Positions 38,821 to 45,955 of a DNA stretch of 64,000 nt are shown here, in pieces. Every line of letters starts with the position of its first letter. Within the stretch, counting starts at the first letter, position 1. The DNA comes from Dimorphilus gyrociliatus (taxonomy: Eukaryota; Animalia; Annelida). The stretch covers positions 3,467,891-3,531,890 of the forward strand of contig CAJFCJ010000002.1 of the NCBI GenBank assembly GCA_904063045.1, written 5' to 3'. The notes under the pieces were generated by a model that was not told the origin of the DNA, did no database searches, and saw only the letters and a program-made list of their open reading frames with translations. The translations under genes were made by a program, and so were the position numbers.

Positions 38821-41074
38821 TTATCTTTCCACTTTGTTCTTTTGTTTAATGTAAAAATATGCCCCTTCTTTTGGTTGACTTTCTATACAAACAACTCTTT
38901 TCATATAACATTTTTCTCTAAAATAAACGAATCCCTTGCAATTCCATATTTTATAGCAATGTTCTAATAGAAGAAAACAATAAGTAAATAGGAAAAAATT
39001 AGCGAAATTACACTCACCGGCACAATATTCTAGTGGACGATTAGCAATTGTCATTCCGTAATCATTTTTTAAACAGTCTCCTCTTCTAATTAGATAATTG
39101 TATCGATTTGAAGTATAATTAGTAGTTGATTTTTTTTCATAAGTAAAAACTGTTAAACTTTCACTTAAATTAATTTCTGGACACACTTCTGCTTTCCTTG
39201 AACATGGATAATTTGATGTTGGATGAAAATTATAAGTAAAAGCTAGACAACTAGGATCACTTAAACATAATCTTCCACATTCTTGAGGTGTTAATTGTTG
39301 TGATCCAAAAGCACGAGATGGACAATCTCCCTTGTATCTTCGAAATTTATCCTCCAGTGAAATGACTGAAAAATCATAAATAAATCATTATGTAAAGTGA
39401 ATTATGATTACTATACAGTATAATTACATTGTTCTATTCTCATGAAAGTCGTGCGATTTGTAAATTTTGAATCTACTTTACAATAAGTATGAAATTTTCG
39501 GCATTCTTTCGTTTTTTCGAAATACTCGAAGGACAAACAATTAGGAGTTTTATAACAAGAGAGAGCACAATCTTCTATTACTGCTTCAACAAATGTCACA
39601 GAAGAGCTAGGTGATTCCTTGCAACTCCCGTTTACAACACGAAATTGGTTATCTCTAGCTACAACTAAACATATTTAACAATAGTCAGAAATCTTCTTCA
39701 ATTAAATAACTAAATAACTACAGAGATTAGCTATCACTTTTGTAAAAATGCGTCCTTCCTCTATTTTAATAACCTTATATTTGGTTGAAGTTAACCCAAT
39801 CCTATCATAAGACTCGGGTTTCATCCGTAGAGAAACATGCCTGTTTTAAAAATAGCTAGTTAATGAACTATTTAACATAATATTTAAACAAGTTTATACA
39901 CTAATTATACCTGAGTTTATTTACCGGATTTCTTTTATCCCGTCTGTGCTTTATCATTGTAAATTTCGATATTTCCTGAGGAAATCGACTAATAAACATT
40001 TTCTTATTTATCAATCTGAAAAGGCAAACAAAGACAAAAAGAAACAATGAAGCAGGTCCAATTAAGACATGTGCTTTTTACCCAAAAAGATAAAAAATAC
40101 CATCTTATTTTTATGTTAATTGAGTTTTCTGTTGAACTCAACTTACGGATTGATAATAATTTACCTGTTCTTCATGTCATCATCTTCTCCTCCCCAACCG
40201 TAAAAGGCTGTAGAATATCCATTAATTGACTCAAATTGATGTGGAAAGAAAGCCAGACTGCCCCCAATTAAACCTGAATATAATATTTTATATCTGAATT
40301 TATTCACGTACGAACCAATATGTCTCGGAGCCAAAATACAATTGTACATGTTTCGATCATCTTCGGATAACATATCGACATCGTGAAATATAATACAATC
40401 ATAATTAAATAATTTCTTAGCTTCTATAAAACCAATGTTCATTAATGTAGCTTTATTAAATATTCTAGGTTGATTTTGTTCAATTACAAATATTCTGTAT
40501 TGTACAAGTTGGGATTGGAGAATTGGGTGAATATAATTCATAAATATTTTTAAATGTCTTTCCCTATCTCGATAAGGAACAATAATTGCAACCTTTTGAA
40601 ATGGAGTGCAAGATCTGGGTTTAAATTCTCCTCTTTCATTTAAAATACCTTTAAAAGATTCCTCTATCTCTTCCCAAGATGGAGTATAAGTCGTATTTAC
40701 AACTAATTTTCCCTCTGTTTATAGAAAAGTATTATTTTTACATTAATTATATTTTTCCATTCAATTTAAGATTGAATACAACTTAATGTTTTTGGTAGGC
40801 AATCGCATACTGGCAATGAGTGATTTATCCTAACAGTCCGGCTACGATAGTCTCTTTCACAAATATCTTCATAGTACATCAAAAATTTGTCAAGTTTTGA
40901 TGGAAACACTGCAGTTAATGGTATTTCAGTTGTTTCGTATGTTTTTTCAACTTTAATTGTTGCAGTAGGACGGTTCAGTCGTTTATAAATATAATAGCAA
41001 ATAAGTTGAATACAAATTAATAATACAAAAAGTTTTACAAATCTTCTAGTCATTTTTCCAAATTTCCGAATCAT
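38821..41074 (-). CDS. GT7 type II membrane glycosyltransferase fused to 3 C-terminal PAN domains, copy G2
   Basis: TM segment LFVLLICIQLICYYIY; IVPYRDR, FNKA, FHDVD, GWGGEDDD, MIKH, FTKVIANL. Phase-1 intron, then PAN1 (CALSCYKTPNC), PAN2 (CGRLCLSDPSC) and PAN3 (CAEHCYKIWNC), stop 38821. Exon structure matches G1. Confidence 0.87.
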
Positions 41075-43068
41075 TTTTCAATTTCTAGAGCGAACTACAA
41101 TGGAATAATGGCTGTCGTTGAATATCCGAAAAACTATTTTGTTTGATCTTGCGGCCTATCTCGTTAAAGGAGTTCTCAGTTAAACCTTAAAATAAATATG
41201 AAACTAATACTTTTATAAGCATTTCCTGTTTCGACTAAAGAGGCAATGTAAGAGAAACAAAATATTTACAACTTAAATGTCAGTTTACATTATTGTTACG
41301 ATGATTATTTAAAAAAAAGAGTTAATCTATATAGCTGAAATCTACATGCGTGAAATGAAAGTAGTCGTTCATAATTTTGTTAAGTAAATATTAATATATA
41401 GCTTTTAAACATTCTCTGGCTGTAGGTGAAATTATATATTTCCTTTCCTTTCTATTCTCTTCTTTAGAAAGAGTCATACTTTTAGCAAAACGCTGAGAAT
41501 AGTAAATATGTTACATTAAAATCAATTAACTATACCAACTATTACATTAATAATGATTTAACGTTATTACTAGATTACTTGAAATTTTACTAGTATTGTT
41601 TATAGGATAGAAAATATTCAATTTATAATGAGATATTATCAATTCATTCAAGGATATGGTTTTTCAAGAAACGTTGTGGCGCCATCTTTTAGCGATTTTT
41701 AGTTTACTTTCCACCGTTATGTACTTTAAGAATTATTTGCGTTTTACTTTGGTGCAATCTTACATATTTGCAAAGAGTGACAAATATAGAAAACCAAGTA
41801 GATTTTTACCAAAAAAATATATTACTGGGGGATAAGACCAAAAAGGGAGAAAGGGAAATTTTCTCCGCCCCCTACAACCGGAAGTTTAATAGGAAAAGAC
41901 CTATTTTCATAAAGTTTACCAATAACGAGAAAACTGATATTTTTCTCACACAGTATTGCGTATTAATATAGTTTACTAGTAAATAGGCAAAATTAGTCTA
42001 TTACAATTTTACAGGAAATGTTTTCCCAACTTCTATGGGAATGTATAGATATGGCAGGTGTATGAATTTGATATAAAATTTAAAAATAGCTAAATGTGCA
42101 CTCATGAAGTATATTTGTTTATTTAAGGTAGTACTGTGATCTTTGAATAGGCTACAAAATATCTTATTATTACATCAACTAAAACTCTGTAAACAGATAA
42201 AGGATACAAACTTCTACCTGTTAATGAATACTGATAATAACTCTAGTTTAAGAAAACGTTGATAATTTTCAAATAAACACTTTTCTTTGACGTTGTAAAA
42301 TAGACTCTCTCTCTACGGAAACATTTAATTTATTTCTATTTGTAAAATCAATGAAAGTTTAAAAAGCATAAGCAGTTTTATAATACTATTTTTCCAATTT
42401 AAAAATTGACAAAATACTTTTTTTTACCAATTGTACAATTTATTATCACAATGCAGCTTAACGTAAACAATTATATATCAAAACTGCCTAATTGCTTTCA
42501 TATCTCACCATGAACCTGTTTGCTTAAACCGCCTCTCAGCGTTCAGCTTATCAGAGTATTTATCGAATTATGACATCCAACACGTTAACCGGTACTAACT
42601 GGTCGTTGTAATATCCTTTGAGTATCTTAAATTTCACAACCAGCTAAATTAGTTTTATTCAATGCAATAATTCCTTCGAAATTTACTTCCTGTAGAATCA
42701 CTTTCCTACTTTATCTAAAACTATTTTTAACAAGCTCTTCTCATCTCATCAAAATTATATTTTTACTTTAAATGTTTAATATTTAAAATTATAATTTAAT
42801 TATTCATTCATTCATCTATTAAATTAGAATATTCATATTTTATATGTTCAGTAACTTCAAACGGTAGATAGATAAGAAACAATATTAATGAGCTAGTTAG
42901 TCCCCTTCATTTGAATAATGGTGCTAGAGTGCTGGAAGCGCCACTTAACCGAATGGCTCATTTTGTGAAGAGACGCAGAAAAGTGAGGAAAGGTCAATTC
43001 TTTTTTCAGATTTATTAATGTTTTTCTATTTTTTCGCACTTAAAATGAAAATTATTTTATTATTACAG

Positions 43069-43779
43069 ATGAATAAATTGATGAGCATCATTCTCGTTGT
43101 ACTATTTTTACAATGCGCTTGGAACTTACCACCAGAATACTTTCGTAATGGGTAAAAATCTCTTGTAATATATTTCTCATAAAATATAATTGTAAACAAA
43201 TGCTATGATCATTTATTCTTAAGAACATAAATAGTATTGATATAAAAGGAAAAAGAACAACTTTTTTCAAAGTAATTTACGACCATACTCGTATTTTCCA
43301 TAAAAATTACCATCTCTCTATTTTCTTTTTATTCTTCATAATTCTATAATATATTGTATACTGAATATTCAATTTTGAACTTTTTCCTTCTTTAGATTGA
43401 AAATTAGACAATAACTTATTTTAATAAATGTTTCCTAATTTGTAGAATCGTTATCTTAAACTTGAACTAGCAAACAACAAACTGTCTAAAAAGTAGAATG
43501 AGTTTTGCCATTCCTGTCAAACATTAGATAGATTAGTTATATTCAAAATACCTTAATGTATTATTTATTAACAGTTTTGCCTGTATTTTCTATTTCAATA
43601 GACGTTCAGCTTGGAGTTCACCTTACAACAGTAAATTTGAAAAAATTACTCAAGCAGTTTGCATTGAATGCGCAAAGCTAATTGGTGAATCGGAGGCGGC
43701 AGCCTGTCTGCAAAATCGTTCAAGCAGTTGGAAAGCATGTTTTCGAGCTGTTTTTATGGACTACCAAAAATCTGTATAA
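43069..43779 (+). CDS. Putative small secreted neuropeptide/hormone precursor (86 aa; exons 43069-43151 and 43602-43779)
   Basis: Phase-2 splice gg|gtaaaa...caatag|a gives MNKLMSIILVVLFLQCAWNLPPEYFRNGRSAWSSPYNSKFEKITQAVCIECAKLIGESEAAACLQNRSSSWKACFRAVFMDYQKSV*. Signal peptide, Gly-Arg site and four Cys. Not in the ORF track. Confidence 0.65.
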
Positions 43780-44644
43780 ATTATTAGATTAGATATGTGA
43801 TTGAGTGAAACTTTTCAATGTCTGGGTACAATAGTATATCATATATATATATATTTTAATATATAAGTATATATATATATATATGAATACTAACGAGCTG
43901 TGCATTTTACATATTTAAAAATAAAAAACATTTGACAAAATTTTAAACTATAATAGAATAAGTAGAAATATGTATATCTAGCTCTCTAAATCTGAAAGTT
44001 AAACTGTCTCTGCACCCCGGCACGAATCCTACAGAGCGAATTCATTTAGCAATTTTATTAAAATCCGGTGTTCGTAGTATAAAAAATAGTAGAGAAGTAA
44101 TCTCCATTATACATTATTAAAAAAGTAGAAAAATACAGTAATCATTAAAATTAATTACAGTTGTTAATGAATAAAAAATTTCTTCCTCTTTTCAAAACAT
44201 CCGATAACTCAAACGGTGCTACGGTTTAAACGCTATCTGTATTTTATACATCTATATAAATAAGTTATATGCACTCAGACATAAAATTGTTAAAAGAAGA
44301 TAACATATTGCAGTTTTAAGGAACAGAGGAAGAATTATAATTGGTGTAACTTTTGAAGCTATGTGTATGCATTTAAGAAGAGTATAGGAAAAGTTTCCCT
44401 GAAAGTGCTCAGTTGGAGAAAAGGGGCCAGGTTCTAAGCATTAAATCGTATTATCTTCTCTTCTAGTCCATTGAGAGTAAGTAGTTTATACATTCGATGG
44501 CAATAGTAACACTAAAAAAAGCACTTACATTCATCATTTCACATATTGTTTTGAAGTTAATCGAGTATAATATAAACTTTTTTATCACTTTTTTTTTCTA
44601 ATGACTTATAAATAGGACACACGTTCAATCCTAATCCATTCAAT

Positions 44645-45955
44645 ATGGTACAACTGAGCGGACTTTTCCCTTTCCTTCCTTTATTGTTTGTTGTGAGTCG
44701 TACTTGTAATTCAAGCTAATAGGAAACGCATATTTTTTAATTTACTCTCTAGACTTTATTTACGCTTATTGAAAATGCAAGTCAGAATAGAAAACGAAAT
44801 TTGGTAATATATGTCATTTTTGCTGTCATATTTTCAATAAGATTTATGAAGTAAATTCATTTTAAAGTGTCTGGGAATGAAATTCAATTCTGTGGACGCT
44901 GCACTCTTCGGCTGCGACGATGAGATTGATATAAAAAATTCCAAACCTGTCATAGTAAGTTGGAATTAACTTGAAAGAGAATTATTTATTATTTATAATA
45001 GAAAAGCTGCTTAATCATTGAATTTTTTTCTATAGATAAACAAAGCCAAGACTTCAACCGACTTTCTTCATTTGGAGAATATACAGGATAGTAAACCATT
45101 GAATTTAACTCGTTTAGAAGATCATTTCTTTCTTCCTAAATACATAACTAATAATGAAGAGGTTATATAATAGTTATTCAATAAGTATAATTATATGTAC
45201 CGCATAAACTGTTTATAATTGTGCAAGCATAAAAAATATCCCTTTTTTTTCATTATCCAATAAAGAAAGAGACTTTCATAAGCACAGCTGCAAACGGATA
45301 TTACAGAAGTACGCTAATTATACAAATTACACATTTTTTGAATAATTTCCATTTTTCTCTTTCTATTTCGTATTTTCATCGATGTTGAATAATCTTAGAG
45401 CTTCGAGAACTGTATAACGAATTTGATTGGGATAGAGATGGAAGTTTAAAACGAAAAGAAATTATTCATTTGAGAAATATACTTGGAAGAATTTCATTTG
45501 ATTACCTTGACTACTATGCGATCAAAGCTAAAGGAATTGGTTTGTACACTCTCATTAATGATTTTCGAATAATACTTTAAAATTAATCTATAAAAGCTAC
45601 AAGAGGTTCAAAAATGCTTTGTTTCGTTGATTTTATCAATTTGATTCAAGTAAATTTAATCCAATATTTTCGTATCAAAAAAATTTCTTAATTAATTATT
45701 TAATTATAAAACTCTAAAATAGCAAATTCATCGGAAAAGAATTTATTTAATGGAGTTTCATAAACTTGATAAATATCCAAGGGACAGAAGACTAGAAGGA
45801 TGGGATCTTTTTCATGTTCATCCCGATTTAAATATTCATTGTAAAGATTTGGGATCCCGCGAAAATATGTCAATATCACCTGGTAGGTATGAAACAGAAA
45901 CCCAATTAAATATATATATATATATATTGCAGTATATCTCCGTTATCAGCACTAA
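44645..45955 (+). CDS. Putative secreted EF-hand protein (multi-exon, hand-assembled)
   Basis: MVQLSGLFPFLPLLFV|CLGMKF signal-like start. Exons splice in phase through FDWDRDGSLKRKE (canonical EF loop) and FHKLDKYPRDRRL (SPARC-like EF with Pro insertion), then a ~50 nt intron to VYLRYQH*. Confidence 0.55.

Follow-up and report, generated by a model that had tools for sequence, protein, structure and literature searches.

The window analysed here, a stretch of 64,000 nucleotides of AT-rich animal DNA (about 29% GC) from the annelid Dimorphilus gyrociliatus, very probably carries a genuine gene for a small neuropeptide precursor, a further copy of the 'sCAP-like' gene of this species that the published list lacks. 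Judged from its sequence and from its relatives, this paralogue among the annelid sCAP-like precursor genes is probably functional. The family itself is already known; the novelty lies in the additional copy, in which the peptide is unchanged and the tail, predicted to be CHH-like, has diverged strongly. For a miniature model annelid with one published sCAP-like precursor, the neuropeptide repertoire thereby grows by one gene.

The candidate gene lies inside a 3.5-kb gap flanked by two other genes, and its two coding exons span C2:3510959-3511669 in the assembly. Its features are the following (positions are those of the window; a slash within a sequence marks an exon boundary):

41074, minus strand: ATG of a GT7 glycosyltransferase gene, one flank of the gap
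42880 to 42982, plus strand: candidate 5' exon, mostly untranslated, with an in-frame ATG at 42954 (MAHFVKRRRK) and the end AAA/GTGAGG
42983 to 43068, plus strand: candidate 86-nt 5' intron, GTGAGG...ttattacAG, abutting the start codon
43069 to 43125, plus strand: ATG and signal peptide (MNKLMSIILVVLFLQCAWN), the cut site placed by homology
43126 to 43149, plus strand: codons of LPPEYFRN, the predicted amidated octapeptide, as translated
43150 to 43151, plus strand: exon 1 ends in GG, two thirds of the split codon for the amide-donating Gly
43152 to 43601, plus strand: 450-nt phase-2 intron, GTAAAA...caatAG, GC 0.23
43602 to 43605, plus strand: third base of the Gly codon and the Arg codon, completing the R-N-G-R cleavage/amidation site
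43606 to 43776, plus strand: 57-aa tail with four Cys, C-x2-C-x11-C-x10-C, a predicted three-helix, two-disulfide CHH-like domain
43777 to 43779, plus strand: stop codon TAA
43920 to 43925, plus strand: first AATAAA 3' of the stop, a candidate polyadenylation signal that would imply a 3' UTR of about 140 nt
about 44646, plus strand: apparent start of the gene on the other flank of the gap

Exon 1 (43069-43151) translates as MNKLMSIILVVLFLQCAWNLPPEYFRN plus the two bases GG and provides a 19-residue hydrophobic leader directly before LPPEYFRN. Exon 2 (43602-43779) has 58 codons, R-SAWSS...QKSV and then the stop. The donor AATGG/GTAAAA at 43152 and the acceptor ttctatttcaatAG at 43600-43601 join the two, whereby the Gly codon is composed of GG and A across the junction and the Gly-Arg site is present only once the transcript is spliced. 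Exon 2 was missed by the list of open reading frames (ORFs) because its frame has no upstream start codon. The earlier note had proposed just such a hidden two-exon product of 86 aa, in which a signal peptide precedes LPPEYFRN-G-R and splicing alone creates the Gly-Arg site, followed by a domain of the pattern C-x2-C-x11-C-x7-W-x2-C. Translations and splice signals confirm the product and its length (split Gly codon included), the GG+A codon confirms the origin of the processing site, and the Cys at positions 20, 23, 35 and 46 of the exon-2 piece agree with the pattern. The note had further suggested that an exon upstream could splice in frame. Here the candidate junction would run in frame, on the plus strand, from AAA/GTGAGG at 42982 to ttattacAG/ATG at 43069, and it is compatible with the structure of the paralogue described below, in which an acceptor also lies directly before the ATG; the exon itself is probably 5' UTR. 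Its GC content is 0.40-0.45 as compared to about 0.2 in its flanks, and the 86-nt intron is close in size to the published median intron of 66 bp.

Several further observations concern the surroundings of the gene. The candidate 5' exon contains a short upstream ORF (MVLECWKRHLTEWLIL, 42918-42968) that overlaps the in-frame ATG at 42954, and if the exon is transcribed, this ORF may affect translation of the main ORF. About 300 bp 5' of the exon, positions 42500-42640 form a patch with a GC content of 0.35-0.40 within intergenic DNA of 0.1-0.3, which may be a promoter or regulatory region; an Rfam scan of 41000-45000, patch included, gave no match. The downstream neighbour (44646-45560, plus strand) looks like a separate secreted-protein gene, with a first exon ATG...MVQLSGLFPFLPLLFVV/GTGAGT and, in a later exon near 45390-45550, an EF-hand-like stretch (DWDRDGSLKRKEI). 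For exon 2, a second phase-compatible acceptor AG is present at 43573-43574, the use of which would remove the Gly-Arg site. We judge it unlikely: it would add nine non-coding-like codons and a fifth Cys, making the Cys number odd, and it has no counterpart in the paralogue.

That exon 2 is coding can be assessed against chance. As null model we used a third-order Markov model of non-coding DNA of the same genome, from which 817 non-coding open frames were simulated. Under this model about 17 open frames of at least 80 codons are expected by chance per 64 kb of such AT-rich DNA, which is a point in favour of the view that the locus is no gene at all but an open frame that arose by chance, with accidental splice signals. 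The codon usage of exon 2 gives log-odds of +7.1 bits, as compared to -6.6 +/- 4.1 for the simulated frames, none of which (0/817, P<1/817) scored as high; real coding chunks have a mean of 7.9, and exon 2 lies at their median. Its GC content is 0.40-0.41 versus 0.28 +/- 0.035 in the simulated frames. The 22 open codons 5' of the acceptor score -7.1 bits, i.e. non-coding-like, and GC contrasts between exon 1 (0.35), exon 2 (0.40) and the intron between them (0.23). Antisense to exon 2, all three frames contain stops. Concerning exon 1, 13 phase-compatible ATG..GT first exons were counted within 2.5 kb upstream of exon 2, and exon 1 (with in-frame alternative ATGs) is the only one among them that both resembles a signal peptide and lies close to exon 2.

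AlphaFold2 returned a compact three-helix model for the exon-2 piece alone (pLDDT 80, pTM 0.62), but a control of the same length, a non-coding ORF of 57 codons (42004-42174, minus strand), was likewise given a confident-looking model, one long helix with pLDDT 73 and pTM 0.43. Because this control reached 73, we dropped pLDDT by itself as evidence for a real tail protein and give weight only to the compact fold; for translations of this AT-rich genome, single-sequence pLDDT says little on whether a gene is real. Even with this point conceded to the chance-frame view, an accidental frame does not explain an exact LPPEYFRN-G-R behind a signal peptide, as in a published gene, nor an intron whose position and phase equal those of the paralogue, nor Cys residues that align with it. 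Coding score, pattern matches in the genome, alignments and gene structure together effectively refute a chance frame, to which we assign next to no probability.

The peptide belongs to a published family. The Platynereis dumerilii sCAP precursor (Conzelmann et al. 2013), listed in the supplement of PMC3890597, contains LPPDFFRN-G-R, and LPPDFFRN-amide was detected in Platynereis by mass spectrometry (1003.524 Da, PEP 7.8e-126; PMC3890597 supplement). The annelid name 'sCAP' goes back to an assignment made by motif (PMC3890597). For D. gyrociliatus, a single 'sCAP/small cardioactive peptide like' transcript has been published, Locus_4026.0_Transcript_1 (Martin-Duran et al. 2020, PMC7854359 supplement), with ...LPPEYFRNGR... 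and a four-Cys tail. FRN-amide strings were not found in the main texts of the papers, the sequences being given only in supplements. The earlier note had not recognised the peptide and thereby implied a novel one, which does not hold, as the family is that of the published annelid 'sCAP/sCAP-like' precursors. Its reading of the locus as a neuropeptide precursor, on the other hand, is supported by both the mass-spectrometric detection of the Platynereis peptide, which comes from a precursor of the same layout, and the published LPPEYFRN-G-R of D. gyrociliatus.

Locus_4026 is not the window gene, from which its signal peptide and tail differ. A degenerate DNA pattern for PPEYFRNG has exactly two matches in the 78-Mb assembly, one in the window and one at C5:963015-963037 (minus strand). 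The published Locus_4026 protein is encoded exactly at C5, at about 960.8-963.1 kb and in three parts: exon A with signal peptide, LPPEYFRN and GG, a 2019-nt intron, exon B with the tail, and, after an intron of about 60 nt, a mini-exon with the last two codons. Since the pattern matches twice and the C5 match encodes the published protein, the window gene is a second gene, its paralogue. With exon 2 as query, the genome search found this exon to be single-copy at the protein level. None of four characteristic strings of the window gene (0/4) occurs in the PMC7854359 supplement, and the copy is absent from the published neuropeptide list. As to the end of the C5 copy, its exon 2 closes with ...CGTCGTG/GTTAAT and the mini-exon encodes Asp-Ile and a stop (L026:7683-7747, minus strand); left unspliced at this site, the frame would end ...RRG-stop. 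The published C5 copy is listed as a transcript only, without a DgyrP gene id, and both sCAP-like genes appear to be missing from the annotated protein set of the genome.

The two copies, which lie on different contigs, share their architecture in detail. In both, an acceptor AG stands directly before ATGAAT, a phase-2 intron lies within the Gly codon (AATGG/GTAA), and the third Gly base, an Arg codon and a Ser codon stand first in exon 2. Between them, exon 1 is 56% identical; LPPEYFRN is identical in 8/8 residues with four synonymous codon changes, and the signal peptides align, with MN(E)K and L.V..LQ common to both. The tails are only 29% identical; their alignment matches all four Cys, C-x2-C-A, a Gly and C-[LV]-Q-N, and BLASTP of one tail against the other gives E = 0.006 as a single comparison. 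The four Cys described in the earlier note therefore all have counterparts in the C5 paralogue, and by eye the Platynereis spacing is similar. The copies differ in the spacing between Cys 2 and Cys 3 (x10 in C5, x11 in the window), in the length of the phase-2 intron (2019 nt versus 450 nt) and in the third mini-exon of C5, the window copy being able to end within exon 2. Over the codons of LPPEYFRN-G-R, six of ten differ and all six changes are synonymous. It follows that the duplication is old and that purifying selection has preserved peptide and processing site in both copies; no other argument for a functional window copy is as strong as this synonymous-only pattern. The pair offers a natural experiment, in which octapeptide and Gly-Arg are frozen and the tail, its Cys framework excepted, can vary freely. 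Because amino-acid changes are lacking in the peptide while the tail has diverged, LPPEYFRN-amide would seem to be the constrained product.

All searches and all folding were done exon by exon. A Pfam scan of each exon piece found no family at E<=10. With exon 2, a word-index protein search of a 5.8-billion collection gave no candidate, HMMER against 1.84 billion representatives gave zero matches, not even the sequence itself, and the ESM Atlas gave only meaningless helical look-alikes at 0.82 or below. A PDB sequence search with the tail and a metagenome scan returned nothing, and the 45-aa exon-1 ORF was not on record in a look-up of the exact product. A word search with the tail exon of the C5 paralogue returned nothing either. 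Since even this published and expressed copy is absent there, the collections are uninformative on whether the window copy is expressed.

This bears on the idea of a silent or decaying duplicate, a window copy that is unexpressed though intact-looking, which we consider quite unlikely. The lack of a product in the collections searched would agree with it, as would a transcriptome-derived published list that holds the C5 copy only, a tail as diverged as this one and an atypical cleavage context of the signal peptide. The first of these points is uninformative for the reason just given. Moreover, ORF, both splice sites, all four Cys and R-N-G-R are intact, and they are so after time enough for 6/10 codon changes in the peptide region, every one of them synonymous; the codon usage of exon 2 is normal.

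Taking the window copy as a functional precursor gene, we propose the following processing, in which the steps are modelled on established prohormone processing and the Platynereis peptide serves as guide for the signal cut before Leu. The signal peptide would take the pre-propeptide into the secretory pathway, and a prohormone convertase would cut after R-N-G-R, with Arg at P1 and P4. A carboxypeptidase would then trim the Arg, and the exposed Gly would be converted to a C-terminal amide, yielding LPPEYFRN-NH2. The 57-residue tail would be released along with it, two disulfides stabilising its three-helix, CHH-like fold, and may be a second signalling product. The tail of the window copy would have a mass of about 6.4 kDa, less 4 Da for the two disulfides. 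Residue -1 of the predicted signal cut is Asn in the window copy (CAWN/L), Ala in the paralogue and Ser in Platynereis; since Asn is atypical at -1, the N-terminus is possibly two or three residues longer, as in WN- or AWN-LPPEYFRN-amide. The analysis shows the gene structure, the coding signal, the paralogy and the constraint on peptide and R-N-G-R site, and the orthologous amide has been detected in Platynereis; expression of the window copy, the exact signal cut, the processing and any activity of the tail are inferred.

Could the tail rather be the main bioactive product, a spiralian hormone of the CHH superfamily, with the octapeptide no more than a pro-piece, as the CHH precursor-related peptide is? 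A structure search of the tail model among 48,161 chains gave CHH, MIH and HAND toxins as best matches, all weak; their scores lie within the noise zone of helical models, and the library's few CHH-superfamily entries are concentrated at the top. HAND toxins derive from the CHH/ITP/MIH superfamily. The molluscan 'CHH DREPs', whose exon structure is the same, are regarded as mature signalling peptides (PMC10501145). Even so, conservation across the paralogues and Platynereis is highest in the octapeptide, which is amidated and detected by mass spectrometry in Platynereis, whereas the tails of the paralogues share as little as 29% identity. We therefore hold the pro-piece reading to be rather unlikely, and the two readings are not exclusive, as both products may act. 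CHH-like tails could also be hormones with diverged specificities alongside a constrained amidated octapeptide.

Among known systems, ecdysozoan CHH/ITP/MIH precursors have a layout like that of the window gene, i.e. signal, pro-piece, basic site and helical hormone. The C-x2-C...C...C of the tail may correspond to Cys 2, 3, 4 and 6 of the six-Cys CHH pattern. As compared to the superfamily, the window gene has no intron inside the mature peptide. Membership of CHH/ITP/MIH by sequence was rejected: a PF01147 profile search of the whole genome gave no match at E<=10, and the mature part has four Cys, not six. Eclosion hormone was rejected likewise, since the PF04736 profile gave only weak matches elsewhere in the whole genome, one of them in an EGF-like region, with no true match, and the tail has four Cys versus six.

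The CHH DREPs of molluscs, cone snails among them, also termed CHH doppelganger peptides (Koch et al. 2023, PMC10501145), are secreted peptides with two disulfides and the pattern C-x2-C-x11-C-x11-C. They have a three-helix fold with kappa-Ssm1a, Ta1a and CHH as nearest solved structures and are encoded by two coding exons, and the phase-2 intron between these follows a short stretch behind the signal peptide that ends in basic residues (PMC10501145). The window gene has the same two exons and phase-2 intron, and the tail model has two predicted disulfides, three helices and kappa-Ssm1a, Ta1a and CHH as its nearest structures; the fold search on the window tail, made independently, thus returned three of the entries also given for CHH DREPs. 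Of the resemblances drawn in the earlier note, that to CHH is borne out by the fold prediction and by Koch et al. 2023, while those to proenkephalin, luqin and vasopressin are not needed. The N-terminal pieces of the CHH DREPs read ...LVRR, ...IRR or ...RHYAG[KSE] in place of LPPEYFRN-G-R, and the FRN-type motif is absent from all sequences in the PMC10501145 supplement. In gastropod and Conus CHH DREPs, ...RHYAG[KSE] lies at the exon 1/2 junction (PMC10501145 supplement), with a Gly, in some followed by a basic residue, at the position of the annelid FRN-G-R. The CHH DREP family, too, might have a short amidated peptide at the N-terminus that has so far been overlooked.

As far as we have seen, annelid 'sCAP' genes and CHH DREPs have not been joined in print. 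It is possible, if doubtful, that the annelid 'sCAP' genes are no sCAP orthologues but the annelid branch of the CHH-DREP/CHH superfamily, each precursor carrying two signals, a conserved amidated octapeptide and a CHH-like helical hormone. If so, the gene was duplicated in Dimorphilus with octapeptide and processing site kept invariant while the tail diverged to 29% identity, a pattern to be expected if the tails have come to differ in receptor or role.

The layout of Platynereis sCAP is that of the window gene, a signal peptide, LPPDFFRN-G-R and then a four-Cys tail, and its octapeptide is identical to LPPEYFRN in 6/8 residues, both changes being conservative. Its tail reads C-x2-C-x10-C-x10-C, as compared by eye to x11 between Cys 2 and Cys 3 in the window, and an extra spacer ending in Lys-Arg, absent from the window gene, separates peptide and Cys domain. 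Taken as an annelid sCAP-like gene, the window gene has LPP[DE][FY]FRN behind a signal peptide and before Gly-Arg, a four-Cys tail of the form C-x2-C-x10/11-C-x10-C and, as compared to the C5 paralogue, the acceptor before the ATG and the phase-2 intron in the Gly codon.

Molluscan sCAP and the pyrokinin/neuromedin-U PRXamide group resemble the window gene in having one or two short amidated peptides behind the signal peptide, processing at Gly-Arg and an Arg two residues before the amide. Molluscan sCAP itself has -[FY]PR[ML]-amide ends and six conserved Cys in the precursor (PMC5996578), and the window gene was rejected as a molluscan sCAP proper, its peptide ending in FRN-amide and its precursor having four Cys. 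Because of this FRN-amide end and these four Cys, as opposed to -FPRM/L-amide and six Cys, orthology to true sCAP is doubtful, and the name 'sCAP' for the annelid family merits re-examination. In gene structure, Cys pattern and predicted fold, this family fits the spiralian CHH-like peptides described in 2023 better than the molluscan sCAP precursors.
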